Assembly (NCBI GenBank): GCA_965644265.1
Contig: OZ286460.1
Coordinates: 126,046,001-126,110,000, forward strand
Reading direction: 5' to 3'
DNA: 64,000 nt
Origin: Glycera tridactyla
Lineage: Eukaryota
Part shown: positions 2,837-62,011 of the stretch, piece by piece
How the letters are laid out: every line of letters begins with the position of its first letter
How positions within the stretch are numbered: the first letter of the stretch is position 1
The notes under the pieces: generated by a model
Seen by the model: only the letters and a program-made list of their open reading frames with translations
The model's database searches: none
What the model was told of the DNA's origin: nothing
Translations under genes and position numbers: made by a program

Positions 2837-3792
2837 CTTATTCGCGCGTCTCGCTGCTAGGTGGAGCTGCAGTAGCGAGCTCCCTCACCGCCACCTCGCG
2901 TCGAGGTGCGACATGAAGCGTGTTGCACATGTGAGACACTCACATGCGGTGGATCATGCTTTGCACAAGTCCTGATGAAAACCGCGGGCATCATGGAGTT
3001 ATAGCACTGATGAGCAGAAACAGGGTTCACAAATGAGTAAGTACATCAGGTCCTCTTATCCCATGTGACTGAATATTTGGCNNNNNNNNNNNNNNNNNNN
3101 NNNNNNNNNNNNNNNNNNNNNNNNNNNNNNNNNNNNNNNNNNNNNNNNNNNNNNNNNNNNNNNNNNNNNNNNNNNNNNNNNNNNNNNNNNNNNNNNNNNN
3201 NNNNNNNNNNNNNNNNNNNNNNNNNNNNNNNNNNNNNNNNNNNNNNNNNNNNNNNNNNNNNNNNNNNNNNNNTCTTTATGGTGAGGTGGTCTTTAGAGGA
3301 GGTTCGACTGTAATAATGATAATGATGATAATAATAATTCAAATATATTTGGTCAAGAAAGGGTCATGTTCGACTACAGGCTTCACATGAATCTACGTTT
3401 GATCTGAAGAAGAAAGCGAGAAGATAAAAGCCACGGCTGTCCTTGGGGAAAGGTGTGAACAACACCATCGGTACTCCTCCATCAAGCTACCATGCTTCAG
3501 TGATTTATCTATCTGCTCACTCAAGCATGGAAGCTCTATGGGCTTTGGTTGACATCACATAAGTAGTGCGGTTGTGTGGAAGCCACGGCTCAAAGGTATA
3601 GTATGGTTTTGTGGAAGCCACGGCTCAAATGGTATGCAGAAAAGTTTGCTGAGTATGAGTTCTCCACTGGTTTCAATGCTCATATGGAGCCGTTGATAGC
3701 GCCGCTTGTCCAGGGTAACTTAGTTGCTAGGGGCCGTTGTCGAAATTCCCCCCGCTCATGGTGCTCACCCGCCTTCTCGCGAGAGGTCTATT

Positions 3793-4233
3793 AAAGTCTG
3801 TCAAATCCAAATGTGGCGGGTACGTTTCAGACGCTAACTTCGCCATTTCTGGTCCGATTTCAGTTTCAAAGGCACGAATGTATTGAGGAGATCTTCCGAC
3901 GATCGGCGAATCAGGTTTCATGGACTCTGTATGCTTTTGAAGAGGATTAAGCCATCATTTCATTGCATTTTAACAGCGAATCTGCCGCCATTATCGCCGA
4001 ATATTTGTATGCGAAACAGTGGAGATACGGCCGCCGCACCTGCCGCGAAACCAGCGTGAAATTGACATATTTGGCGTTTTGAGATGAAATGAGCAAGGGA
4101 ACTTCGCCGAGATTAAATTTCTAGCCATCGGACATGTAAACAAAGCCTGTCAGCAAGTTTCATTTCAATCGGAACCGAATTCGCGATGCTGAGGCGAAAA
4201 ACGTACCCGCCACGATTAAGCTTGACAGACTTT
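3793..4233 (+). mobile_element. MITE family A, full length (~440 bp); possibly Kolobok-like (ttaaAG...CTtta)
   Basis: Imperfect 35-bp TIRs: aaagtctgtcaa-N8-gtggcgggtacgttt at both ends. Confidence 0.85.
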
Positions 4234-4482
4234 AGCCACCCTGTCTCATCTGTTTCAATTATTTTCATGTTATCACTGAAATCCCCTTTACTCTACTTTG
4301 TGAAATGTGCCCCGACAACAAGAATGCGCCATCTTTGTTTAGCTTCAATTCCCACTGGTACCCTGTCTATCAGCACACCACTTCACATGTCAACTGAAGC
4401 TTGGGTACCAGTCAGCCAGTAAACAACAAACGGAGTCCCGGCAAAACTCCCTGTTTGGGGAGTGTTTCGAGCGATATCACGT

Positions 4483-4905
4483 AAAGTCTGTCAAATCCAA
4501 ATGACGCTGACTTTGTCAATTTCCGTCTGATTTGACTTCTAATGGCACGACTAGATTGTACAGGTCTTCCGGCGATTAACGAATATAGTCTCGGGTGGTA
4601 TGTATGCTTTGTAAGAGGGGTACACCATCATTTCATTGCATTTTTCGTCGAATACGCCGCAATTATCGGCGATAATTTGTATGCAAAACAGTGGAGAGAC
4701 GGCCGCCGCACTCATCGCGAAACCAGCGTGAAATCGACATATTTTGCGTTCAAAGGTAAACAATAGAGTGGAACTTTGCCGTGATCACATTTCCAATCGT
4801 CGGAGATGTCAACAATGTCCGTCTGCAAGTTTCGTTTCAATCTGAAGCGAATTCGCGATGCTAGGGCGAAAAACGTACCCGCCACGATTAAACTTGGCAG
4901 ACTTC
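4483..4905 (+). mobile_element. MITE family A, near full length
   Basis: Both termini present (aaagtctgtcaaatcc ... aacttggcagacttc). Confidence 0.8.
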
Positions 4906-5329: not shown

Positions 5330-5387
<58 letters not shown>

Positions 5388-5850
5388 TTTTTAGTGATAG
5401 AAATCATGCCAGAGACATATTTCCAGATTGTACTGGCAACAGGTCCATGAAATGTGTTCCAAACGCCCAAATTATGTTTTGGCTTGTATGGTATTTGAAC
5501 CATCAACCTTCCAGTTTGGCACCCTGGCCAGCAACAAACTGCCAATGCTTTTGTCCTCTACACCACGGCGGATCCACAAAAATTGATTCACTATGGATGC
5601 ACTCAAGCCAGAGCGCTGCCAGTGTGTTACCCCCAGTTAGTCAATGTATCACGAAACCTGGCACTCACATTCGCACACATTTTTTTAGTGATAGAAATCA
5701 TGTCAGAGACATATTTCCAGATTGTACTGGCAACAAGTCTATGAAATGTGTTCCGAACGCCCAAATTATTTTTTGGCTTGTATGGGATTTGAACCATCAA
5801 CCTTCCAGTTTGGCACCCTGGCCAGCAACAAACTGCCAACGCTCTTGTCC
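5330..5850 (-). mobile_element. tRNA-derived SINE (family C), two tandem ~294-bp units, (TG)n tail
   Basis: Minus strand has A-box-like TGGTGTAGAGG and B-box-like GGTTCAAAT(A/C)CC. The body repeats at 5386 and 5679, and the second head runs into a gap. Confidence 0.7.
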
Positions 5851-6342
5851 NNNNNNNNNNNNNNNNNNNNNNNNNNNNNNNNNNNNNNNNNNNNNNNNNN
5901 NNNNNNNNNNNNNNNNNNNNNNNNNNNNNNNNNNNNNNNNNNNNNNNNNNNNNNNNNNNNNNNNNNNNNNNNNNNNNNNNNNNNNNNNNNNNNNNNNNNN
6001 NNNNNNNNNNNNGCCCAAGCCCAATCATTTTGTGTTCATACAGGGTTTTGACGGCTTCATATACAAGTATATGATTCAGATTTCAACAAAGTCCTATCTG
6101 TACAGGGCATAATCAAAATACATACATTACCACAACTAGTTACAGTCAATATATAGTGGTAGATAGCAGATTGTAGGTTGTTGTCACAGGTTGGTAATAT
6201 ATGGGCGGATACTAGCGCCCAAGGCGAGGTGGCATTCACCGAACGTCTTACGGTATCTCACAAATATTACAATACATTCTACCATTTATTGAGAATATGC
6301 AGCATTCCCAACATTGCAGACTGCAGGAGGGTGCTGGAGTAA

Positions 6343-6527
6343 TTGTTTGTACTTGTTTGTTTGAGGCATGTATCAACGCAAGTGTTATGTATGCCGTGTG
6401 TTCCTGGTTAATGAAAGCTAGATGTTCTATCCCCTGCAGACATCACTCTCACAAACCCTGAACACCAGATGATGGGGAACCTGAAAGGTTGTCAAGTGGA
6501 AGTAACTGACAATTCAGACACACCTCT
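6343..6527 (-). mobile_element. Family B copy 1
   Basis: (ttgt)n, then ...gttcctggttaatgaaagctagatgttctatcccctgcagacatcactctcacaaaccctgaacac... Strand given as the inferred retroposon sense (tail AAAC on minus). Confidence 0.8.
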
Positions 6528-6899
6528 GCTGGAGTCACGATTTGGGTGGCGAACAAAAGTGGAAAAGTAGGAGGTGGCATTCAGGGTGTTGGCTCCTTTC
6601 TGCACCATTCTGTTTTTCTGTCACGTGTCTCTGTTGGTAGGTTTCCCTTTGAAAATCGCAAGGCTGCCTGAATCTCCCTAATCTTTCATCAGTCCATCAT
6701 ATTGTCTTGATCCCCTCCCCGATAACCGCCTGCCTCCCAAAATGATTTTTGATCTTGGTATGTCGAGAAAAGACCCCTTTTGTCTCCCGGTTATTGGTCC
6801 CTTCTGGTTTACTCAAATGATTCAAAGGTGGTGAATTCGTGTCATGTACTGCTAGTAAGGTTTGGACCGTAATCCACACACCTAATGATGCGCACTTAC

Positions 6900-7330
6900 G
6901 GTAGCTTTCGATCCGTATCATCGGACCTTTCTCTGACTGACTGACGGGGGCGGAGATTTGGTGAACGGTCAGTCATGTGACACGATCCCAGAAGAGATTG
7001 AGTCACATGTCTGAACCAGCTGTTCGTAGATGGCTGGAATCTGGTGCCTTCCCCTGTCCCAGTTGAGCTGGGCATTGTTGGTGTCGATGTGTACCGCTCT
7101 GTGTACTTCTCTTATGGATGTCGTGTATTCCCCGAAACACTGCGATTCAGACATGTTTATTACGTCATGTCTTTAATGTGTCGAACCCCAGTTCGTTGTG
7201 CATTTCCCCTGTGCTTCATAGGGCTTCTGCTTGCAATATCATCCGCCGACCGGCATTCTGTAATGCGTTCTTTGAGTCATTTACCTCTATGTGTCATATG
7301 ACACGTCACAGTGGTCTATATCCGGTAAGA
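6900..7330 (-). pseudogene. Penelope-like element 3' relic: GIY-YIG C-terminus plus degenerate hammerhead-like motif
   Basis: LKERITECRS and REVHRAVHIDTNNAQLNWDRGRHQIPAIYEQLV resemble the end of Penelope GIY-YIG. It is followed by stem GGTCCG/CGGATC plus GAAA at 6903-6943. Confidence 0.55.
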
Positions 7331-7378
7331 CCAGGGGCTTGTATAAGCATGGGTGCTGTTTCTTGAGCGATGACAGAT

Positions 7379-7505
7379 AAAGTCTGTCAAGTTTGATCGT
7401 GGCGGGTACGTTTTCCGCCCTAGCATCGCGAATTCACTTGAAATATAACTTGCAGACAGACCTTGCTGTGATCTCCGACGACTAGAAATATGATCGCGCC
7501 GAGGG
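7379..7505 (-). mobile_element. MITE family A, one end only
   Basis: aaagtctgtcaagtttgatcgtggcgggtacgttttccgccctagcatcgcg. Confidence 0.75.
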
Positions 7506-8039
7506 ACTAAAACAAGAACCAATGACAGTGGAGACTTCTGTATTGGGATTGATTTTTGGTCATTTGTGTGTACTTTCATTGGAGAAGTTCATCGCTGAAC
7601 CCGGTTAATATGGTTTCTATGTGGAGTTTCATATTCAGATGATACTAATACCAGTATTTCACTCATTCTTCACAATGCTTATTTAAAATACTCTCGCTGA
7701 ATAGGGCAGATCATGCTAAATCCATCAATGTATTTTGTGTGTGTGTGAAACATAAATCAGTGCCATGCGTTGAACAATTTAATGTAAAAGGAATCACTTT
7801 ACAGACTTTACCTTTGTCAGTTTACCCGCCTGCCGATCTTGTCAATTTCTGGGTGTGTTGTCTGTGCAGCGAGAGATCAAAGAGCGCCGCGAGAGCGGGA
7901 GATCCGCATTCTTCCGCATCGCCGATATTCCACTCATTTTGGCGGTTATCATGGGATAAACTTGAATGCCAACAAGAAAGTAGCAAGCTGCGAGAAGAAT
8001 TGTGGCTATACACATGCTGACAGAGTAGATCAGGGAGAC

Positions 8040-8440
8040 TAAGCTGATTATGGTGAGCCTAAACCATTTTAGCATTTAAACCCTTTTCGAGGGAATACAT
8101 CAAACACTTTCCATGACGAAATGAACATGGTGATGGGCTCTGTGAGAAGTGAGAGTACTGGACAGTGGCAGATGCATCATTCCCCCTCACTTTGAAATTG
8201 ACATAAACCTTGTTGATTTCCTTGCCACTTCTTTGAAGTAGCCCTCTGCTTTGAAATTGACAACCTTGTTGATTTCCTGAACTCCAACTGAAGGCACTCT
8301 GCTGCTTTGAAATTGACACACACCTTGTCAATTTCGTCACCTGCCTTGAGCAGCCACTCAACCAGAACTTCCCCAGAAGGTCTTTCCATGTACATTTCAT
8401 GAAATTCAATTACTGACCACTTTACCTGCCTCCAAACATC
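8040..8440. repeat. Unclassified repeat with three 31-bp palindromic units (second copy at 23960-24335)
   Basis: ctttgaaattgaca-N-accttgt(tg/ca)atttc at 8190, 8249 and 8305, with 28-bp linkers. Confidence 0.75.
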
Positions 8441-8564
8441 TGCCATTTCAACTCTGACTATATTAGCCACATGCTGGATATAGTCCAAAACAACAACCGC
8501 TGACTTACAAAAGGCCCAATCATGCAAGAATGTTGGCAAATGTTGTTTCGTCATAGACAGAGCT

Positions 8565-8989
8565 AATGTGGCGGGTACGTTTTTCGCCCTAGCATCGCGA
8601 ATTCGCATCAGATTGAAATGAGACTCGCACACAGACATTGTTGACTTCTCCGATGATTAGAAATGTGATCACGGCCATGTTTCCTTGTATATTTCACCTT
8701 AGAACACAAAATATGTCAATTTCACGCTGGTTTCGCGGCAAGTGCGGTGGCCGTATCCCCACTGTTTCGCATACAAAAAAAATCGCCGATAATGGCGATG
8801 AATTTGCCGAAAAAAGCAATGAAATGATGGTGTAACCCTCTTCAGAAGCATGCAGTCTAGCCAAACGCAGGTTCGATAATCGCCGGAAGACCTGTATAAT
8901 CCATTCGTGTCATTAGAAGTCAAATCAGACGAAAATTGACGACGTTAGTGTCTGAAACATACCCGCCACATTTGGATTTGACAGACTTC
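8565..8989 (-). mobile_element. MITE family A, near full length
   Basis: gtggcgggtacgtttttcgccctagc ... cccgccacatttggatttgacagactt. Confidence 0.8.
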
Positions 8990-9149
8990 ACCAGTCGATG
9001 TGGGAAGATGTGAGCTACCTTAAATGTGACTATAGTGTCATTTTCACTACACTTCTGTCAGGTAGGTTGAATCCAAGAGGACAGCCCCCATGACCTGACC
9101 CTGTCTGGTAACCAATTGTGGTCCAGCAGCCGAGGCTGCTGGCCACAAT

Positions 9150-9430
9150 TTGGAAATATGTCAATTTCACGCTGGGTTCACGATGTGTGCGGCGCCGTAT
9201 CTCCATTATTTTGCATACAAATAAGCGCCGATGATGGGGCGGATTCGCCAAAAGATGCAAAGAAAAGATGGTGTAATCATCTTCTAAAGCCTACAGACAG
9301 CCCGTGACTAGTTCGATGATCGCCGGAAGATCTGTACAACCCTTTCGTGCCATTGAAAATATCACCAGACGAGAATTGACGAATTTAGCGTCAGAAATAT
9401 ACCCGCCAATTTTGAATTTGACAGGCTTTA
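9150..9430 (-). mobile_element. MITE family A, partial
   Basis: Body and one terminus (cccgccaattttgaatttgacaggcttt). Confidence 0.7.
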
Positions 9431-9861
9431 GTTTGCCGCTGCAATTTTCAACCGAGTAATTTATATGGTTAGTGAACGAAAGGGTACAGCCTAGCCAGAC
9501 TTTAGCCACCCAGTGCGCTTTCTTCGCATTAATAGTGACTTTGTTTCTGTGGAACCAGCTTTACAGCTTGCAACTGTAATTCTAAATCCGGTGTTTGCCC
9601 TTTGTAGTATATGGCGGTATTGTCCGTATACATTTTATGTCACAACTGGGAACATTTGCAGGGAGATAATTTATAAAAATTACCAGGAGCAAAGAACCCC
9701 ACAGTTAATATCAGAATCTTTTGAACGGACATTACCAAATTTTGTATCCTGTGTTCTATTCTAAAAGTAATTTTCGAACCATTTCAAGCTATCGTCATCT
9801 ACACAAGCAAACACACGAACGGGCACGTGCACGCACGCTCAAATTCACTGCCCCCTCGCAA

Positions 9862-9932
<71 letters not shown>

Positions 9933-10221
9933 CCATGTGCCCCTCGTCGATGAAAGTTAGATATTCTCTCCCCTGCAGACATCATTCTCACAAACCCTTG
10001 ACACAAGATGATAGGGAACAAGATTGTCAATTGGAAGTAGCCAGCAGTTCAGACACACCTCTACCTATCTGACATGAACATGATGAATCTCAAAATGGCG
10101 TGCCTAACTATGTGACTGGCCTGAAGCTGGTACTCACACCTGGTAGCTATGCTCCATTTCGAGCAAAACGACATGTTTGAAAGAAGGAGAAACAATGGGT
10201 CTGGAGAATAATCAACCCATG
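9933..10221 (-). mobile_element. Family B copy 2 (abuts (CA)n at 9865-9930)
   Basis: gatgaaagttagatattctctcccctgcagacatcattctcacaaacc... Confidence 0.75.
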
Positions 10222-10245
10222 TTTGCACTCACAGCTTCACAAATA

Positions 10246-10503
10246 CAGTCAAACTTGTCCTAAGCATGAAGCTGCGGGACGTGAGTAATGTGTGTGCTCA
10301 GAGCAAGGGCATGCTTAGTATACAGTCAAACTTGCCCAAAGCAAGACTTGTACTAAGCAAGAACTTGTTCTAAGCAACAGAATTCTGTTCACCCTACCAA
10401 AGTATTTATCACTATATCTGACCTGTTCTAAGCATGAACTTGCTCCCCCCCCCCCCCCTCTTTTTTACTTCCCGTGGCTTCATGCTTAGGACAAGTTTGA
10501 CTG
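10246..10503. mobile_element. Tc1/mariner (pogo-type) MITE
   Basis: 27-bp perfect TIR cagtcaaacttgtcctaagcatgaagc with TA on both flanks; an extra internal left end near 10323. Confidence 0.85.
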
Positions 10504-10619
10504 TAAGTCAATTATAGTGAAAGATACTTTGATGAGATGAACCGGATCCTGTTGCTCAGGACAAGTCTTGCCTAGGACAAGTTCAGTTGTAAGAGTTCCC
10601 CCCCCCCCCCCCCCCAGCT

Positions 10620-10998
10620 AAAGTCTGCCAAGCTTAATCGTGGCGGGTACGTTTTTCGCCGTAGCATCGCGAATTCACTTCACGGCCTATCTCTCTTGTA
10701 TATTTCACCTTGAACGCCAAATATGTCAATTTCACGCTGGTTTCGCGGCAGGTGCGGCGGCCGTATCTACGTTGTAAACATAGGGAAGGCCGGGCGATAA
10801 TGCCTGTGGATTCGCCAAATAAATACAATGAAATGATGACGTAATCCTCTTCAAAAGCATACAGGATCCCTGAAACCTGATTCGATAATCGTCGGAAGAC
10901 CTCCTCTATACATTCGTGCCATTAAAACTGAAATCGGACAAGAAATGACGAAGTTAGCGTCTGAAACGTACCCGCCACATTTGGATTTGACAGACTAT
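10620..10998 (-). mobile_element. MITE family A with internal deletion
   Basis: Both termini present. Confidence 0.8.
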
Positions 10999-11249
10999 AA
11001 TTCTCACCTGACCAGTCCCACTAGTAGGATCTGTCTTTATTATCTGATATGCTCAGTCACAGGTGAATAAAGGCTGGTGTCCGTTACATACAGAGGAGTT
11101 GTATAAATTTCTTGTATTACCACATGTGCAATACAGATTTCTGTATTCACTCCTAGGTCACGTGATCAATATTAGCGAATCACATTCGAGCTTCACCCAC
11201 AACAGGCCACCGACACCCAAAAAAGAGAGAGAGAGAGAGTAAGGGGGAG

Positions 11250-50469: not shown

Positions 50470-51086
50470 AGATTGGTGAAACTAGGATTGTCTCGTTTTC
50501 AACACAGTGTCCTATTCAATGTCTCAGTTACAATACACTGCTAATGTCTCAGTTACGACCGGTTACGACAACTTTGTACTATGATTATTCTGACAGCTGA
50601 TGGTACCAGCAGCCGACAATTACCATTCGAAAATCATCAAAGCAAGTTTTCCTCGTGAAATCTTTCAATAAACCATGATGCAGAAAAATCGTAACTGGAC
50701 ATCTTTGGACATCGCAGTCGTAACTTAGGACAATTCAAGACACTCGACTTTCTTGAAGGAGAGAAATTTCTCCAGTGTTCGGAGGGTCATGACCACTTGT
50801 ATTTTCGGGAAGATGGCACTGTAGAGAAAGCAATTGTATGCAGATTGTTCTCCTCTGATACTTATTTTGTATGATTAGACAAGGGGTGGAAATTTGGGAT
50901 CGTAACAGCTTTTTCTTTGGACATTTCCTTATCCCATGTTTTGAATTGGATATTCTCGGAATTTTGAGAGGATTTTTGGGTATGATATATACAAAATCAC
51001 CATCTTTAAGAAAAAACAATGAATGGGAAACTATTCCATGGAATAATGGATGGGCTCAAGGTCGTTTTGTGTCGTAACAGGGGCTC
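50470..51086. mobile_element. Probable DNA-transposon end with subterminal GTYGTAAC repeats (ends ...CTC; Sola-like?)
   Basis: Multiple gtcgtaac/gttacgac motifs; terminus gtcgtaacaggggctc. Confidence 0.35.
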
Positions 51087-51484
51087 AATAAATGTTACGA
51101 TCTATTCTATGTTGGATTTATTCTTTTCTCAGCATCTGACAGGCGCACACTGAGTAAGTTTGTTAAACACAGGGTGTTTTCTTTCAATGGACACCCGCAT
51201 TGTGAAATTACATTGAGTACAAGCTGAGATATGAATTTTCAAAGTTGAAAAGTTGGTATGCCATCTCCTGCCGGTATTACAGGCGATTGTGGTGAGAAGT
51301 CCTTGTTTTTCTTTAAAATAGACCTGATATTCGTATTCCGCGGGTGCTAAAACATAAAGTGGCACACTTGTAGGTGTTTTGGATGAGTTTGGGAATTTTT
51401 GTGACGTTTTGTTCATGAAAGAAATGACTGGACATACGCGATCGCTAGCAGGCACCACATTTGCGAACACACCAATATATATAA

Positions 51485-51553
51485 ATGTTCCTGATTCATG
51501 AAAGCTGGACGATCGGCCTCCTACATGCATCACTATCACAAACCCAGAACACA
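51485..51553 (-). mobile_element. Family B copy 14 (diverged core)
   Basis: gttcctgattcatgaaagctgg...catcactatcacaaacccagaacaca. Confidence 0.55.
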
Positions 51554-51824
51554 GAAATACATACAAACTCTCTTCAGTTCAGCATAGCATGTATCAGAAT
51601 GAATTTATAATTCTCCCGCACATGGATACCTATCTAATTTATTTCATTTATTCGTTGTATCGTTGATGTTGCGTTATTGAGTTATTTTAGTAGATGTAAT
51701 TTTTCATATCGACGTGTTTACTTCATGTACAGTTGACGATATAAATAATCGTATTCTACATTATCATATCCTATACGGCTGTCATGCATGACTACCTCGG
51801 CACTCTAACTAGGACGAGGGAATG

Positions 51825-52995
51825 CATTAATATACCACGATCAGTGAGTGTTATAGCAGGAACGCATGATCGTGTGGTCGGGGTTGAAGGATCACACGAG
51901 TAGGCGGAGCACGGGAGCGCACGACGGCGAAGCCGGAGTGCGCTCCCGTGCTCCGCCTACGAGTGTGAGCCTTCAACCCCGACCACACAATCATGCGTTC
52001 CTGCTTTTATCACACGGATTTGATGGATTTTCAATAAAATCTTCGTATATTTGTCGTTGAATCCATGTTGTGGCTGGACTGCTTTTTCTCCCTCAATCGC
52101 TGGTAACGCCACTGAGCATGCGCGCACGTGTGCGAGTCCCAAGTGAACCTCAGACGAACGTCGCTGTAACTAGTCAAGATGGATAACGATTTCACCTTGT
52201 ACGACTATTGAATATAAATGTGAGTGCGTGAGTGTGTGCGTGAGTGTGTGCGTGAGTTTGTGTGTGGGTGTAGGCTTCTCCACGTTTTATTTAATAGCAG
52301 CGCTATCGGGTTTGTTTATCAAATTCCAAATTGCGTCACGCGCAACGTCGGCAATGTTCGGCTCGCTCACGGAAACACCCGATCGTTGCTGGAGCCGTGT
52401 GATCCGTGACCAAAGATCACATGGGCATGATCCACACGCTCACGGACCTATCCGTGTGATAATGGCCTTGAATATAAGGGTGTTGAATATAACTCGTTGG
52501 GACCACTGTGTCCGCGGCCGCGGCATGAAATGAATCCCCTTTGAAATAGACATGATTTGCAGGCGACTCATCGGGCACAGTTCATGTCAGTAAAATGATT
52601 CCCGGTCCATTCAATTTCCGATTACATGTCATGAATTTAGGTGCTACACAAACAAATAATACATTGATTGATTCCTTATGATCTGCCCTGTTTAACAAGA
52701 CTACTTTCAGACCCCTAGCTAATTTTGAGTCGAATCCTGCCTTTTGTTCATGTTTGGTTTTTAATATAACTCCCGCTTGGTTCATACAAGGGGTTCATGA
52801 GGGGATAAATGTGTTCAACAAATAGACTGAATATCACTCAGATAAGCTAACAGCCTTCAATTAGCATGACAAATCATGGTATATAAGCAAGAAACCATGG
52901 GGTGTTGTCCAGCCTTCGGCCTCGTGAATTATCTAGCCAAAACACAACTCGTGGTTTATAACTTGTCCGGACAACACCCCATGATTTCTCGCTAC
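51825..52995. mobile_element. Family D second copy, carrying a ~610-bp insertion that starts with a 151-bp hairpin
   Basis: Homologous to 12015-12575 apart from 51852-52463. Confidence 0.65.
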
Positions 52996-53298
52996 AGTGC
53001 CTGGGAATACATAACCAATGCTGCCGGTAATGATCTACCCCCCCCCCCCCCCCAGCCTGCGGGCCGTTCAGTTGAAATAACAGAGAAAACGTTCCCCATA
53101 TCCCCTATCAAATATTCTTTATCTCATGTATGTCAAAAAACAGTAGGGACCCTGTTTCCGGTAGAAAACGTTAGCGATTGTTAGTAGCAACCGGGCACCC
53201 TCGAGGTTTACTGTAAGTGTTCCGCTCTATGCTCGCATTGCACTGCCAACACCCACCCCAAGGAACTGAGCTGAAGTATAAGTGAACCAGAATTGTAG

Positions 53299-53700
53299 AT
53301 TGATTGATTGTTTGATGTTTAACAGCATGTATCAACCCAGAGGATTATGTATGCCGTGTGTTCCTGATCAATGAAAGCTAGATATTCTCTCACCTGCAGA
53401 CACCACTCTCACAAACTCTGAACACAAGGTAATGGAGAACCTGAAATTTGCCAAATGGAAGTAGCTGACAGTTAGGACACACCTCTACCTACCCGACATG
53501 AACATATACCTATCAATGAAAAAACCGACTATGTAACTGGCTGGTATCTGATCTGGCTTGATAGTGCTTAATTTTCAAGCAAAGCACAGCACTTGAAACA
53601 AGGAAAAGCATTAGGTCTGGAGGATACTGAAGCATTGTGTTCAATTAAGAACTGTCAACTTCAAACCAGGCTAGCATTAATGGTTGCCCTGAACTTGCAG
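53299..53700 (-). mobile_element. Family B copy 15
   Basis: (ttga)n tgtttaacagcatgtatcaaccc... to aacttcaaaccagg. Confidence 0.85.
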
Positions 53701-55546
53701 TACTATGAATCCTGCAATATTCATGTATATGATGTATATTATATGTTTACTATATATCTTATGATGATTTGTCGGACTGACACTGCACAAAACAAGCACA
53801 CGCATTATTATACATTATAAAGTAGGTATTTATTAACAATCAACAATTTTCTGTCATAATACAGAACGAAAGACTAACAGACATTACTGTCGTTCGCTTC
53901 AGAATTAAAGATAGTATACATGAACAAATCCAAACGTTGTGATCCTTCTATAATTGTGGGTACATCCTGGATAGAAACATATAATTATTCTCCATAATAC
54001 ACAACCTTTAAAATGTCAGTATACCATTCTGAAACAAAGATATGGATGTTAAAAAGAATTGTGATTCATAATGTACCACTGGAATGTAAAAATGACATTC
54101 TCAGAAATAATTAAAGTCCTTGTTGTAGATTTCAACCTGGATCATGTACTATAATGTACCCTGTGCTTGCATGGGCACCATCAAACTTGCACTTTTATCA
54201 CATGGGATGATGGCTAAAAGCGTGATATGAGCAGAAAAGTGGTTTTATCTCCGCTATGTGATAAAGAAATCCGTACCACAGACTCAGGTGATACAGATTC
54301 AGATTCCATCCAGGCTATCTTCGCATGCGTGGTTGCCGTGGGCGGGAGGATAGAACGACGACGATGCACGCCTCACGATACCGCATGACATTCTGTTTCA
54401 ATCACCATGAGATGACCATTTGGCCATTAAAAGGTGAACTTTAGCAGGAAATCACATAATTGGTATTTCGATAATCGCATATCTATTGTTAAAATGGTTG
54501 TTTCATGCGATAAAAACAGAATGACATGCGTGTGTGATGTTCGAGCTGGTATCGGGAGGCCGGCAGACGGGGCACCTCGAGAGCGCGTAGCTCTCGTATA
54601 ACTTACGCGTGTCGTCCTGTTTATGCATTGCATGGTATCTTTGCAGGTAGGTTCAACAATAATCCTATCTAATCTAAGACAAAAAAAGTAGAGATCCGCA
54701 GAGAAAGTAATGATGCATCAAAACTGTACATTTTGTACAATATCACAGATAGGGGGATTATACATGGACCTAATGCAAGAATGTACAGGTGAGCCTGAAT
54801 AATTCATCATATAAAAATACATTACTACTATGCATGATAAATATACACCTGTTCGAGTGGAATATGATAGACATGAATGCTAAATTAATGTGAGCCATCA
54901 TAACACACATCTTTTTATTCGATATATGCATCATTTTCGTTCAGCCAAAATATGGCTGTTATGAGGATGAAGTTGGATACCCACTACCCTCACAGTAAGC
55001 ATTCATAATTATAATACAAACATTGCTATCAATACCCTTATACGGTAACCACCATAATCATCATTATGATGACGTTCATTATTACTACCATCATCATAAT
55101 CATCATCATCATCATCGGAATCATTATTATCATTATCATTATTTCTATCTTTACTTTCATCTTTTTTATTCATTTGATGCTCTTAGTGAATAAGGATTTT
55201 CATTCAAATTGACATCATCATTGAGCCTGATAATGCCCCTGGACAGAGGTAATTGTTTATATGTATCCATACATCGTTGAACGAAGATAAATAAAGAAGT
55301 AATAATCAATCAATCAGCCATCATCGTCATCATTATGATTTGCATTTTTTCTCTTATTCCGAAGTGAATCAATTGGTTCCCTCTGAAATTCTACACTTCT
55401 TATGTGACCAGGGTAAGTTTTGGTTTACAAAGAGTATTTTTCAAAAAGCACTACTGACCATCACATTTCAAAGTTTGTATGGGAGAAACTAGCCCTGCTG
55501 ACATGTAAACAGACAAACAAACAAACAAACACACATACACTGATTT

Positions 55547-56515
55547 ATTATGGCAGCAAGGGTGCGGTAGACCTATCGACATTTTGATCACGACAAATTT
55601 TGTTTGTTTGTTTGAGGTTTAACGGCATGTATCAACCCTAGGGTTATATATGCCATGTGTACCTGGTTGATGTTCTCTCCCCTGCAGACATCACTCTCAC
55701 AAACCCCAAACACAAGATGATGTCGAGTGGAAGTAGCTGACAATTCAGACATACCTCTACCAACTCTACAAAAACATAATAAACCTGAAGATAGCATATC
55801 TGACTATGTAACTGTCTGGAAGCTGACACTCAAAGCCTGATATTAATCCCATTTTTTTGCAAGGTGCAGAACTTGACACAAGGAAAAACATTGGTGTTGG
55901 AGAATACTATTTGTTCAATTACAAACTGCCAACTTCAAATCAGCTTTACAATCATGGCTTGCCCTATGCTCGCAGTACAATGCCATCACACAACCTAGTT
56001 ATTATGGCAGCAAGGGAGCGGTAGACCTATCGACATTTTGATCACGACAGATTTTGTTTGTTTGTTTGAGGTTTAACGGCATGTATCAACCCTAGGGTTA
56101 TATATGCCATGTGTACCTGGTTGATGTTCTCTCCCCTGCAGACATCACTCTCACAAACCCCAAACACAAGATGATGGGGAACCTGAAAGGTTGTCGAGTG
56201 GAAGTAGCTGACAATTCAGACATACCTCTACCAACTCTACAAAAACATAATAAACCTGAAGATAGCATATCTGACTATGTAACTGTCTGGAAGCTGACAC
56301 TCAAGCCTGATATTAATCCCATTTTTTTGCAAGGTGCAGCACTTGACACAAGGAAAAACATTGGTGTTGGAGAATACTATTCGTTCAATTACAAACTGCC
56401 AACTTCAAATCAGCTTTACAATCATGGCTTGCCCTATGCTCGCAGTACAATGCCATCACACAACCTAGTAACCTAGTCGCAGCCCTAGTAACCCAGAACT
56501 GGTGTGCATGGTACC
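55547..56515 (-). repeat. ~454-bp tandem duplication containing family B copies 16 (55598-55998) and 17 (56051-56515)
   Basis: ttatggcagcaaggg recurs at 55548 and 56002; both copies share private mutations. Confidence 0.9.
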
Positions 56516-56644
56516 CACTTTTTGCATCACAACAGACAGTTGCAGTCGATACAAGAATGTGACAATAGAACATCCATTCCTTGATTCAAAGGTGAGGTCA
56601 TCTTTGTCTACTGGTAGCCTCTGGATTTGGTCATAGTTCGATTT

Positions 56645-56975
56645 AGTTTGGTTAGGTTCAGATTCAACAAAATGTATACATTCAGAGGATTATGTATGAT
56701 GTATCCCTGATCTATGAAAGCTGGAAGATCTTTATCCTACAGGCATCACTCTCACAGACCCGAACACAAGATTATGGGGAATCTGAGAGGCTTTCAAGTG
56801 AAATTAGCAGTGAGTCTCGATAAACCTCACCTGAACTTCGAAGAACCTAAGGATAATATATTTCTATACTTATCTGGCTTGAACCTCTATAGCAATACTT
56901 TCTTTTCAAGTGAGAAACAGTTTCGGAAACAAGGAAATACATCAGGTCTGGAGAATACTCGGTGTGTTCACTAAT
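56645..56975 (-). mobile_element. Family B copy 18 (old, diverged)
   Basis: gaggattatgtatg...cctacaggcatcactctcacagacccgaacacaag...ggtctggagaatact. Confidence 0.65.
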
Positions 56976-57729
56976 GAGCTGGTAAGATTAGCTTTCATCT
57001 AATACAATCACCTTGCTCTACGACATATAATTCATACAATCAGGCTGGATAGCTCAAACTAGATGTATCACAGATTCAACAGTGCAATATTTGGCGCACA
57101 AGATATCTTTCATCAGGGGGTAAAAATATTACATATCATACAAGTATGGTGTGTTCCCTAATGTAAATGGACTGGTTTTACCCTTCATCACCACATAAAT
57201 GCAACTATTCAGTCTCCTAAGGCCGGGAAATTGTGATGTTGATGATAATGGCACATACAGTGGCAAAGATTTTGTGGAAAAGAATAATGATCTGTACAAT
57301 GGACATTGCCACAATATGCTCAAGGAGAAAAATCGACAATGACAATGAAAAATTCTTTCCATTCTTTCATGAATATGGACGCCCTATTCTTTTAGATCAC
57401 AAAACAGAAAATGATTACATGTTAACTCTTTGTGGGTTTCTTGGGCATCATTGTGGACAAATCTGGATGAATTCATACAGTGGCATCATACTGTCACCAT
57501 AATTGTAAGCAGTGCTCCATCATATCATATTATACACGCAACATTTTCGGAACAGATTCGACATTTTCAGAACAAACCTCATTACTGTAGACTCAAAAGT
57601 TTACAATTTAAAATGAGAAAAACTACAAATCATTTCAAGTATATTCGTCAACCTAATATCTTGCGCACTGTGGATGAAGGACGTTCTCAAATGGAGGAAT
57701 GAAGTTCTTTTAGTGCAAATATTATTGTG

Positions 57730-57870
57730 GTTGATTGATTGACGTTTAACGACATCAACCCAGAGGATTATGTATGCCATGTGTCCCTGATCAGTGATAG
57801 CTAGATGTTCTGTCCCCTGCAGGCATCACTTACACAAACCCTGAACACAAGATGATGGAGAACCTGAATG
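57730..57870 (-). mobile_element. Family B copy 19
   Basis: (ttga)n cgtttaacgacatcaaccc...cccctgcaggcatcacttacacaaaccctgaac. Confidence 0.8.
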
Positions 57871-58763
57871 TTATTCTGGATCTGGTGCAGTTAGCGCTAC
57901 TGACGTCATGAAGACGTTATAGGGAATCCCCCATCGTGACGTCATTAGCAGCTTTTCAATAGCATCTTCATCTCCTCTTGTTGTTTACGTCGTTGCGACT
58001 CTCTCTGCGCGCGTAGCTTCTTCCTGTACTCGTCCGGTTCAACGAAAACGAGGCGATGGCGTTGACGGGTCCCACCATCAAATCTCGGTGTCACTGCTGT
58101 CCATTTCGTCCATTTTGTAGGAGTCGTGCTATGTACATCACGGCGAACTGAAAATAAAAAACCAACAAGGAATCTGTAACAGGTGTCTCTAATGTAGTGT
58201 TAGGAATTGGTTGCACTTTGAGAATCGATTATTGGTTATTCCAACCGATCGATTATCAATTATAATCAGTTTGCAACACTGGCACCACAACCACTACCTT
58301 GTTTCTCCATTGTTTTGTCTCCAGAATCATACATATACACAGATGTATGCAAAGTTGTCTACTAGGGTATAGGGTTTGTTTTGGATGGAGCAAGATGACA
58401 TTATTTTGACTTCACAGGAAATCCATAGCTTTTTTTCGTAAAAAAAGGCTGAATTTTCCATTTAAATATATATGCTGACTGTGTTCCGATTAAATCGATT
58501 CCACATCTCTGCAATTGATTGTCTATTTGGCCACCAAGATCGATCGATAATCGGGAATTAATCGATAATCGTGACACCACTACCCTAATGAGTATGAGAT
58601 CAATGGCAACATCTCCAATATGGCCGTTGATACACATGTTGATAACCAGAGTGGACTGCATAGGAAACTGCATGCAAATATTTTCACACAACCGACCATT
58701 TGAGTAAATGATCAATAGATATACCTATGTAGACCCTACATATCTACTGACTCGTAGAGTACG

Positions 58764-58958
58764 TTTGTTTGATTGTTTTGATTATGTATGCCCCGTGTTA
58801 TTGGTCGATGAAAGCAAGATGCTCTCTCCCCTGCAGGCATCACTCACATAAACCCTGAACACAATATGATGGGGAACCAAAAAGGTTGCCAAGTGAAAGT
58901 GGCTGAAAATTCAGACCCACCTCACAGCCACGCATAAATCGATGGCATATCTGTCCAT
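58764..58958 (-). mobile_element. Family B copy 20
   Basis: gattatgtatgcccc...cccctgcaggcatcactcacataaaccctgaacac. Confidence 0.75.
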
Positions 58959-59799
58959 GTAAGTGACTTAAAGATGAATATTTAGTCACACAGATCAATA
59001 CAAAATGATCATAAAAGGACGAAAGTTGCATGCAATTTGTACCAAGCAGAAATCTTGCTTGGAAATATAATGCCGAGATGAAAACACCATAAAATGTATT
59101 GTGAATAAGTCAGAATTCTTTTCCTGAGGTACGCCAATAAATGAACCCTAATTACGTTGAATCCATGCGATTTCATTCACAAATTTTAGCAACATGGGCG
59201 AAAAATGGGTATATCGGATGATAATACAGAATACCTTCGTACCGGGCACGAGTAGGCGGTACGTGCCTCAGAACCTTGTCCCGAGAAAGGGCATCCCCCG
59301 GGAAAGTTACTCGACAGGTATGACCTCCCGACATTCTATATACTGTAATTCTGCTCAACATTGTCTCATACCCATTGCATCCATCGTCATTGAAATTGAT
59401 TGAATTGACTCAATTCTTCCAGGAGAGCATCATCAACGATACCTGTCTACGTTGCTACCTCTGGGTAGCCAATGGCTACCAAATTCACCCTCTGGCTACC
59501 ATAATTTGAAAGTTAGGGGCCAGCCGCCCATACCATTTTGAAAGGTTAGAATGGCAATGTATTGACTGACTGTCAACATTTTGCACTGGCTACCGAAAAT
59601 TTCAACTTAAGAGCCAGCAGGCTCCTAAATATTTTGGTCAACGTAGGGTCCTGTGGTTGATACTATATGGTATCGTATTCAAGTCAATGATCAAAGGCGT
59701 GAAAATTGATCACAAGAGAGTGATCTTGGCAAATCCAAGGTGTGAACGCTAATTGCCACATGGTGAGGCCTGGACTTGATCTTGGAGGGAGTGAGTAAA

Positions 59800-60020: not shown

Positions 60021-60564
60021 ACTAATCATGCGAAATGAGAAAGAATGATGCAAGATTGGCCTGAAATGGCTGATTTAATGACACAGTAAAATGATTCATG
60101 CTTATTGCTTCTTCCACTCAAGAACTGCCGGTATGTAGCGATTCACGCATCCTAGCATAGGTGGCAACGCCCAGTGGAAACAAAGCCAATGTTGACAATT
60201 TGAGGTTCGGCTAGTGAACTTTTCCACAAATTGTCAACAATCTGGGGGTCATCCTCCACTGGGGCTGGTCTTTGCCTGTTAATGAATGCCATGCATCTTT
60301 CTCAGATCAGCGATTTATCACATGGGTGTGACGTTTTAAGTGAAGTATCAGGTGTTGAGTATTGCATGTTATACTTATCAGTTGGGTGAGAATTACCTTT
60401 TGACGATTTCTCTCCTAGTACATGTGATATAAGCAAGAATCTATGCCCGTGAGGTAAACATGCAACACCAAACTTGGTGTGAATTTCGCAACAATTTTGA
60501 CTTTGGCTGCATGACATCCTGCAAAATTTACACCTCGGTTGGTTCACGGCCATATATTCTCGCT

Positions 60565-61004
60565 AAAGTCTGTTAAATCCAAATGTGGCGGGTACGTTTC
60601 AGACGCTAACTCCGTAAATTTTCGTCTGATTTGACATTTAATGGCACGAATGTACCATACAGGTCTTCCGACGATTAACGAACCCGGTTTCAGGTACTAT
60701 GCCAGCTTTTGAAGAGGATTACGCCATCATTTCATTGCATTTTTTCGTCGAATCAGCGCCATTATCGGCGATTATTTGTATGCAAAACAGTGGAGATACG
60801 GCCGCCGCACCTGCCGCAAAACCAGCGTGAAATTGACATATTTTGCGTTCTAAGGTCAGATATACACAGGAATCTCGCCGTGATCACATTTCTTATCGTC
60901 GGAGATGTCAACAATATCTGTCTGAAAGTCTGATTTTAATCTGATGCGAATTCGCGATGCTAGGGCGAAAAACGTAACCGCCACGATCAAGCTTGACATA
61001 CTTT
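60565..61004 (+). mobile_element. MITE family A, full length
   Basis: aaagtctgttaaatccaaatgtggcgggtacg ... aagcttgacatacttt. Confidence 0.85.
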
Positions 61005-62011
61005 ATAAAGCCGATCATCTTGACCGACGAATTGCTAATAATTTCACAACAATATAACATTAGTAACACTTAACTGCACCAGAACAGCCTACAGTTGGCC
61101 CAGATTGCATACATAGGATCGACACATTGCTGACAATTTCGAAGCAACCGAACTTGTCCCTTGTCTAACTTCTCTGAGCGATGGAGGGCTGATATCAAAA
61201 TGTTCAGTATCATGATTAAATTAATAAGCTGCAATACAGATAGCCAGAGAATATGCATTGCATACACTTTGTGGTGAGTTCTTGGAATCTTTAAGATAGG
61301 CATTCCAGCACTACAGGACATATTCGGTAGGGGTCCTTTCGAAATGTTGGCAAACACCATTGATCCATTTGTATGAAGAAATGTAAAATTTGTATGAAAG
61401 ACATCAGGAATCTTGATGCTTACAAGGATGGATCAATTCAATAGAGAGCTAAATATGACTGGCCTGAAAATGTGGGACATACATTCAACTTAAAAACGGA
61501 ACTATAAGCTGATCAACGGACATTGCCTTAATGATTTTTGGCATCACTCATCTCTGTCTTAACACTCAGACTCTGCTTCCAATGCTAGAGGACTTATATT
61601 CCCCAATTTTTACATGCAAGCAACTCGTACTCTCTGAGGTCAGTAAATACATCGATTCTGATTAGAACTATCTGCTCTACAGTACTCGGAATACTAAACT
61701 ACATAATCTATGTTCTAGGGTTACCTTGAGCTAGGTTATTGATGTTAATACACAAAGCAAGCTGTATGGAATAAAGATAACTACATCTGAACCAGCCACA
61801 TCTGGACGGGAGGGCGGGGATGAGTCCAGATGTAATTCTCAACATTCCACACAATCATTACACAATCATTACACATAATGATTAGACAACACTCATTCTC
61901 ACTATCAATCATTGTACCATGCTGTGCTCGCTCAGAACTAGAAAATAGTGTTTTCCTGTGAAGTAGAAGCAGGGATCAGAACACAATGTCAGCACGGCAT
62001 TATACAAAAAC

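Follow-up and report, generated by a model that had tools for sequence, protein, structure and literature searches.

The window analyzed here is a 64,000-bp stretch of the Glycera tridactyla genome (positions 126046001–126110000 of contig OZ286460.1, within a 2.04-Gb assembly). It contains a long series of copies of one dispersed element, family B, all lying in the same direction. Among them stand pieces of a G protein-coupled receptor (GPCR) gene on the plus strand, MITEs (miniature inverted-repeat transposable elements) of a family A, members of a family resembling tRNA-derived short interspersed nuclear elements (SINEs), and relics of long interspersed nuclear elements (LINEs); a minus-strand ankyrin-repeat gene lies beyond the right edge. 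A first-pass annotation of the window had described ~20 co-oriented copies of an unidentified element and offered four explanations: strand-specific integration of a retroposon, purging of one orientation from a long minus-strand transcript, spread by local duplication or conversion, and a decayed array of cassette exons. We confirmed that the one-way orientation of family B is real and found it to be stronger than first described, and the unidentified element can now be called a LINE-dependent retroposon.

To count and orient the copies, we used a profile hidden Markov model (HMM) of 838 positions, made from 29 aligned full-length copies on other chromosomes. As the model had been built in antisense orientation, a plus-strand match denotes retroposon sense on the minus strand. 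At E<1e-3, the window gave 23 matches between 6349 and 58975, all of them on the plus strand and none on the minus strand, which correspond to ~20 insertion events. Searches by blastn with three window copies also returned family matches on the plus strand only, the sole minus-strand matches being (CA)n simple repeats. The early count of about 20 same-orientation copies and the failure to find a reverse one thus both held. Assembly gaps adjoin three of the copies (at 12828, 26540 and 46145) and hide their true ends, leaving the orientation calls unaffected.

All window copies have their sense strand on the window minus strand; profile positions, counted from the 3′ tail, and identities to the consensus are given in parentheses. 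The leftmost copy, at 6342–6528 (2–195; 91%), has its own target duplication, TGCTGGAGT, on both sides. It is followed by 9933–10256 (61–387; 75%), with a (CA)n tract beside the tail side, and by 12697–12822 (48–178), which stops at the assembly gap 12828–13005 and has its 5′ extent hidden. Two old internal fragments at 14202–14471 (293–580) and 14811–15038 (467–727), both ~65% identical, are possibly one rearranged copy. The copy at 19877–20198 (3–326; 91%) carries a (TTGT)n-type tail at its left end, and beyond it lie 21448–21829 (6–394; 85%), a short fragment at 25352–25406 (83–138; E=2e-7) and 26545–26747 (47–265; 69%), the last directly after the gap 25898–26540 with its tail side hidden. 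The longest window copy, 35194–35644 (32–486; 91%), served as the query for genome searches. To its right are a short fragment at 36955–37006 (91–142) and the copy at 37766–38046 (6–285; 91%), for which AATGATT is a possible 7-bp target duplication. Three copies stand close together at 46148–46295 (9–138), directly after the gap 45997–46145, at 46457–46624 (9–205; 81%) and at 46895–47145 (3–257; 89%), the third with its own target duplication, GGTCATTTATC. After a short fragment at 51486–51553 (66–133), an old fragment at 53204–53295 (383–472) abuts the tail of 53297–53707 (4–423; 81%), the two possibly representing one event. The copies at 55599–56001 and 56053–56527 form a tandem duplicate with a period of ~454 bp, 55545–55999 and 56000–56469 being 95% identical. 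The series ends with an old copy at 56643–57019 (6–406; 68%), 57721–57870 (2–154; 85%) and 58780–58975 (50–259; 77%), with a (TTGT/TTGA)n tract just leftward of the last. As first described, window copies begin on the left with (TTGT)n or (TTGA)n tracts and stop at different points on the right.

The pattern extends well beyond the window. Across 244 kb (−90 to +154 kb in window coordinates), the profile HMM gave 47 family B matches, 45 on the plus and 2 on the minus strand, and the one-way block reaches from −53.6 kb to +153 kb or beyond, thus covering at least 207 kb. The two minus-strand matches are short internal fragments (profile positions 239–337 and 343–388), both without the acceptor and poly(A) region of the element. 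On its left, the block is bordered by 36 kb (−90 to −54 kb; loci L045–L048) of young autonomous elements on both strands, with open reading frames (ORFs) of 700–837 aa, within which the profile HMM found no family B copies.

Genome-wide, a family B 33-mer gave 33,321 matches at up to three mismatches (16,561 forward, 16,760 reverse) and an exact 68-mer gave 1,488 (754:734); the genome carries at least 33,000 family B copies, balanced between the strands. In five small public DNA-like sequencing runs, the depth over 52800–58800 was ~1–10 on unique DNA and 10^4–10^5 on the family B copies, which therefore have a very high copy number. By the 33-mer, the 244-kb region holds 16 matches and the genome on average one per 61 kb, making the region fourfold denser.

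We mapped co-orientation on 154 copies (78 plus, 76 minus) identified with two 15-mers in the first 11.8 Mb of one contig (C1). Pairs of copies pointed in the same direction in 75% of the cases at distances of 0.25–2 kb, 92% at 2–5 kb, 79% at 5–10 kb, and 72% at both 10–20 and 20–40 kb; beyond 40 kb, the share was 43–54%. Of the 153 neighboring pairs on this map, 96 agreed (permutation p=0.0008), and orientation flipped within 18–45 kb. Extra copies within the 3.4-kb loci of 29 other family B copies lay 15 times in the same and 4 times in the opposite direction. Pairs found by exact 15-mer at less than 20 kb were co-oriented in 48 of 55 cases, while close pairs found by exact 33-mer numbered six in the same and three in the opposite direction, too few for age to tell selection from integration bias. 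Co-orientation over ~40 kb is thus normal in this genome, and the block around the window is an unusually long, extreme instance of it. The bias behind the improbability first attached to the 19:0 split stands, but the naive binomial probability overstates the surprise because neighboring family B copies are co-oriented genome-wide.

Other repeats in the same DNA show no such bias. MITE family A has 14 copies in the region, eight one way and six the other, in line with the mixed orientation noted at first; those in the window lie at 2599–2837, 3790–4235, 4482–4904, 7377–7503, 8564–8988, 9153–9433, 10680–11002, 22793–23854, 24346–24572, 43668–43891, 45113–45259 and 60562–61006. The tRNA-SINE-like family, which combines a B-box-like GGTTCAAATCC with an A-rich stretch and ends in a (TG)n tail and in which ARAGORN called no tRNA, serves as an internal control with an approximately 5:3 mixed orientation. 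Its members are at 5360–5850 (minus), 11249–11629 (plus) and 34694–34786 (plus) in the window and at −42.5 kb (minus), −7.6 kb (plus), +102.7 kb (plus) and +104.6 kb (plus) in the flanks. Reverse transcriptase (RT) relics occur on both strands, on the plus strand at 15.7 and 27.3 kb and on the minus strand at −21 and +140 kb. The two LINE relics of the window, at 15739–16062 and 27347–27856 on the plus strand, include one Pfam RVT_1 match (E=5e-12), the other being of RT C-terminal type without a Pfam match. The orientation bias is therefore specific to family B and regional.

Three further repeats complete the inventory. A large minus-strand retroelement occupies 1–2158 and continues to −3 kb, with ORFs of 600–670 aa and a weak GDSL-lipase-like ORF (E=4.5e-4, under the Pfam cut-off). 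An element of ~180 bp, bounded by the terminal inverted repeats ACAGTCAAACCTG...CAGGTTTGACT and holding repeats of GGTCTTTATAGAG inside, is found at 18948–19136 and at −13.3, −12.0, −7.9, +77.5, +92.6 and +100.5 kb; its 6:1 orientation comes from seven copies, too few to establish a bias. To the right of the window, a tandem repeat at 64657–66609 (locus L032) has several minus-strand frames open together, up to 617 codons, a pattern that suits a stop-free satellite better than a coding exon.

Family B is a non-coding, non-autonomous, LINE-dependent retroposon of ~838 bp. Full-length copies, reaching well past the 460 bp first described, have a simple-repeat tract on one side and a sharp end, ...CCCACCCTACCCAC, on the other, and the longest open frame of the consensus on either strand is 72 aa. 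No target duplication had been recognized in the first-pass annotation; we found perfect direct repeats of 9–15 bp flanking 14 of the 16 full-length genomic copies, in addition to those of the two window copies. The tract at the left end differs among copies, being (TTGT)n, (TTGA)n or (CTTT)n, and the sense-strand 3′ tails are (ACAA)n, (TCAA)n or (GAAA)n depending on the copy. The tail end is common to the copies (profile ~2–60), and the other end falls anywhere from 138 to 836. The left-end (TTGT)n/(TTGA)n tracts are the complement of the 3′ simple-repeat tail, and the ragged right ends are 5′ truncations. Because the tail complement sits on the left and the 5′ truncations on the right, the sense strand of family B is the window minus strand, which corrects the initial plus-strand reading.

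The absence of a tRNA head was borne out: ARAGORN was blank in four full-length loci, and Rfam gave nothing above chance at E≤1 on one full-length copy; on the window itself, ARAGORN and Rfam at gathering thresholds were likewise blank. A classical SINE head for RNA polymerase III (tRNA, 5S or 7SL) was not found in family B. Around nucleotides ~1–60 of the sense consensus, in loci L002–L030 outside the window, a TATA-like and a CCAAT-like element (...TCTATAGAAGG...CCACCAATGGGCGCGGG...) can be seen by eye, and from its sequence this pair at the 5′ end could be an internal promoter of RNA polymerase II type. No family B match lay beside the RT-bearing relics within the 244 kb that might have pointed to a partner LINE. 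In itself, family B is ordinary, an element copied by LINE target-primed reverse transcription. It resembles known LINE-dependent retroposons (those mobilized by CR1 or L2, and head-less, SINE-like elements) in its target duplications, 5′ truncation and tetranucleotide 3′ tail as well as in being non-coding and dispersed in tens of thousands of copies; unlike classical SINEs, it is head-less, and at ~838 bp it is longer than SINEs usually are.

The copies arose by separate insertion and differ widely in age. Their 400-bp flanks were alike only where they held a neighboring family B copy or another dispersed repeat, which upholds their independence against descent from a few segmental duplications. 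A maximum-likelihood tree built on 22 regional and 28 genomic copies scattered the regional ones among copies from other chromosomes: those at 46898, 35194, 21448 and 91823 paired with L010, L003, L013 and L030, respectively, and the copy at 46457 was not a sister of its neighbor at 46898. Local sister pairs numbered only two, the tandem duplicate 55599/56053 (support 1.0) and a near-identical pair at −53.6/−51.5 kb. The regional copies are between 62 and 91% identical to the consensus and accumulated over a long period.

The acceptor-like motif and reading frame noted on the plus strand are indeed present: the acceptor 15-mer TTCTCTCCCCTGCAG, exact in seven window copies, and the frame DITLTNPEHK... 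correspond to the antisense consensus of family B. The coding interpretation of the frame did not stand. It is open over 54 codons only in the consensus, its mismatches are distributed over the codon positions without periodicity (8.2/7.2/8.6%, p=0.19), and it is broken by indels or stops in 20 of the 22 regional copies.

A candidate host gene for the block lies to the right. At 81960–86957, 18 kb beyond the window, the minus strand has an open frame of 1,666 codons, within which we delimited a giant exon of 4.9 kb (81985–86891, minus strand) encoding ~1,633 mostly disordered residues, with the acceptor ...TTTTTCCAG/GAT and the donor CAAG/GTAAAG. The exon opens with half an ankyrin repeat, DKQLTPYDAAVLKRNEEVAEFLK, and carries a repeated GVRHSPGVPMTPKDD unit. 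Three ankyrin exons of the gene lie further to the right on the same strand, at 117470–117709, 122376–122837 and 125105–125341 (Pfam ankyrin, E down to 5e-21), and outside these exons the gene had no Pfam matches. This ankyrin-repeat gene (loci L039, L041 and L042) was previously unannotated. A word-based protein search with the 1,633 residues returned no relatives and the ESM Atlas no usable match; HMMER found 12 weak, unnamed relatives of the conserved C-terminal part (~70 aa, ending ...DWE.YLQG). All 12 break off at ...YLQG and continue with unrelated residues resembling donor read-through (GK*, GE*), and the common break suggests a conserved intron at this point and at least one further exon downstream, towards the window. 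In the verified intron of the gene, which separates the ankyrin exons from the giant exon, nine family B matches at 91.8–104.9 kb comprise eight in sense and one in antisense orientation, the latter a 46-bp fragment. The direction of family B agrees with the one host gene checked.

The explanation we favor, with somewhat more than an even chance of being right, is that the one-way copies mark one or more long minus-strand transcription units in which antisense copies fail to persist. Among the four explanations offered at first, purging from a long minus-strand transcript is thereby the best supported: the adjoining minus-strand gene and its co-oriented intron copies are there, and the gene would still have to reach into the window. 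The block would then be a stretch in which only sense-lying copies were retained, the transcription unit most likely being the last intron of the ankyrin-repeat gene with exons at +82 to +125 kb, and the likeliest filter would be purifying selection on antisense insertions. An antisense insertion would give the host pre-mRNA a cryptic terminal exon, an acceptor followed ~110 nt on by AATAAA, while a sense insertion would give it acceptor-like sites but neither a strong donor nor a poly(A) signal. On the antisense strand of the consensus, an acceptor-like site lies at 106, AATAAA at 214, and the sequence AGGTATGT, resembling a donor, at 669; poly(A) signals are absent from the sense strand, as are donors that match seven of eight positions. 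With 25% A against 32% T in the sense strand, the antisense strand is the A-richer one, and poly(A)-signal hexamers are ~2.5 times more frequent in antisense (21 vs. 8 among 44 genomic copies and 9 vs. 4 among 45 regional copies).

With this explanation, the GPCR would be a small plus-strand gene nested antisense in the minus-strand unit. The receptor, of the rhodopsin family, is present in three pieces at 40271–40627, 41246–41485 and 42883–43425 (Pfam 7tm_1, E=1e-14 and 2e-22), runs opposite to the retroposon block and is interrupted by the gaps 40021–40260 and 41487–42089, which hide its continuity and frame. A PMFGWN motif after its fourth transmembrane helix is reminiscent of adenosine-type receptors, a candidate class for it.

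Several observations weigh against the transcription-unit explanation. Acceptor-like sites occur in the sense strand as well (five in the consensus), and the AATAAA at 214 is poorly conserved among copies. The block, at 207 kb or more, is about five times the typical ~40-kb length of co-orientation, and at 45:2 the ratio far exceeds the biases that selection is known to drive in mammals. The youngest regional copies are as biased as the oldest, and selection alone therefore suffices only if purging is fast. The downstream exon of the gene was not found; on the minus strand of the window, the search turned up neither a canonical ankyrin motif nor any other clear coding exon. GC and AT skews, computed with family B and simple repeats masked, were small and inconsistent and gave no transcription direction. 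The agreement with gene direction comes from a single host gene; the five sequencing runs behave like low-coverage DNA from related samples, none being recorded as RNA; and minus-strand transcription of the window, 18–82 kb past the giant exon, and onward to −53.6 kb is what we infer.

Selection may instead be unnecessary if family B receives its orientation on integrating, from the way in which transcription or the replication fork moves, with a strand-coupled target-primed reverse transcription strict to ~20:1. The strand-specific integration proposed at first survives in this form as a serious rival, which we regard as possible though doubtful. Should it be true, the map of more than 33,000 copies would record, fossil-like, which way the DNA was transcribed or replicated, and the strand coupling would have a polarity opposite to the human L1 bias and be far stronger.

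In the transcription-coupled version, target-primed reverse transcription by the partner LINE would succeed, or its intermediate would evade repair, only where a transcribed gene's template strand serves as the primer strand, and copies would be born in the sense of the gene. The equal bias of copies of every age, the least diverged included, is what such a mechanism would produce. The block is fourfold denser than the genome average and family B is absent from the adjacent 36 kb, a contrast that fits targeting to transcribed DNA but may simply reflect dilution by young elements. Human L1 has an integration-level, repair-dependent bias, though in the opposite direction (PMC5717806), and the differently tailed tRNA-SINE-like family is unbiased, as if the property belonged to one LINE machinery. 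Against this version, the target sites of 13 full-length copies had no strand-specific motif beyond a weak A/C preference after the nick, and the surviving antisense fragments, lacking the suspect signals, fit selection better (n=2). On balance, we hold transcription-coupled integration to be rather unlikely.

Coupling to the replication fork, for instance through priming on the lagging-strand template, is less probable again. The block would then be a stretch replicated in one direction, and the agreement with the gene would be a by-product of transcription and replication proceeding in the same direction. This would suit a block that exceeds the typical stretch and spans a gene body, the plus-strand GPCR and other sequence, and human L1 is reportedly subject to a mild lagging-strand preference in the 2019 work of Flasch and of Sultana. 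Co-orientation over ~40 kb with flips within 18–45 kb is, however, short for metazoan fork-direction domains, and the bias is not shared by other families retroposed into this DNA.

New copies could also prime on the (TTGT)n tails of old ones, or land beside them, and build one-way clusters without any regional cause. Such self-priming finds some backing in the clusters of five to six copies in 3.5 kb (55.5–59 kb) and of three in 1 kb (46.1–47.1 kb), in copies abutting or nested in the same direction (53204–53295 against 53297; locus L006), and in the 75–92% agreement of pairs closer than 5 kb. Most copies, however, stand kilobases of unique DNA apart, the target duplications of full-length copies are not TTGT-like, and co-orientation is still 72% at 10–40 kb and here holds over 207 kb. 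Persisting beyond 5 kb, it allows self-priming at most a short-range contribution, and as the whole explanation we consider self-priming very improbable.

One-way transposon blocks of 100–200 kb are a hallmark of one-strand PIWI-interacting RNA (piRNA) clusters in flies, and a plus-strand cluster of this kind could keep antisense family B as a silencing template. The density of family B in the block would agree with this. Yet only family B is co-oriented, with MITE A at 8:6, the tRNA-SINE-like family at 5:3 and RT relics on both strands; the block crosses introns of a protein-coding gene; and the habit was found everywhere sampled in the genome. We give the piRNA cluster slightly less credence still. 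Finally, local duplication or gene conversion and a decayed cassette-exon array, both rejected, jointly retain next to no probability: the former has in its favor one tandem duplicate and one near-identical pair, against unique flanks, own target duplications and a tree that mixes regional and other-chromosome copies, and the latter has the acceptor-like motif in most copies, against a 54-codon frame without codon periodicity, broken in 20 of 22 copies of an element present ~33,000 times on both strands.

The favored explanation, selection within long transcription units, predicts that a long minus-strand transcript covers the window and that the GPCR is nested in it in antisense. If the bias proves genome-wide, family B would show, without any annotation, which way transcription runs and how far genes extend in an invertebrate genome of 2 Gb whose introns are giant, and it would be a clean system in which strand-coupled integration could be told apart from selection against cryptic splice and poly(A) signals. 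It would also suggest a common rule, by which the A-rich, signal-bearing strand is kept out of pre-mRNA whichever strand of the element that is.

Among known systems, the flamenco-type piRNA clusters share with this locus a 100–200-kb block of one-way transposon fragments. They differ in that all their retroelement classes are co-oriented and that they are not introns of protein-coding genes, whereas here one family is affected and the habit is genome-wide. For sense-biased LINE or SINE copies in molluscs, we found no report in the library of literature searched. There is also a likeness to mammalian introns, in which L1 and LTR (long terminal repeat) elements are biased in orientation relative to transcription (PMC3088655, PMC1794541), retroelements in genes lying mostly in one direction. 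There, the bias has been put down to one strand's cryptic splice and poly(A) signals or to repair at integration (PMC3088655, PMC1794541, PMC5717806). With selection as the filter, family B would follow the same rule as mammalian L1, the signal-rich strand being kept from pre-mRNA, with the harmful strand swapped. Mammalian LINEs and LTR elements lean antisense, and mildly so, whereas family B leans sense, by 8:1 within the verified intron and by 45:2 across the block; and unlike in mammals, a single family carries the bias, other families of this DNA being unbiased. It is the strength, the sense direction and the family specificity of the bias that are unusual, and they appear to be genome-wide.

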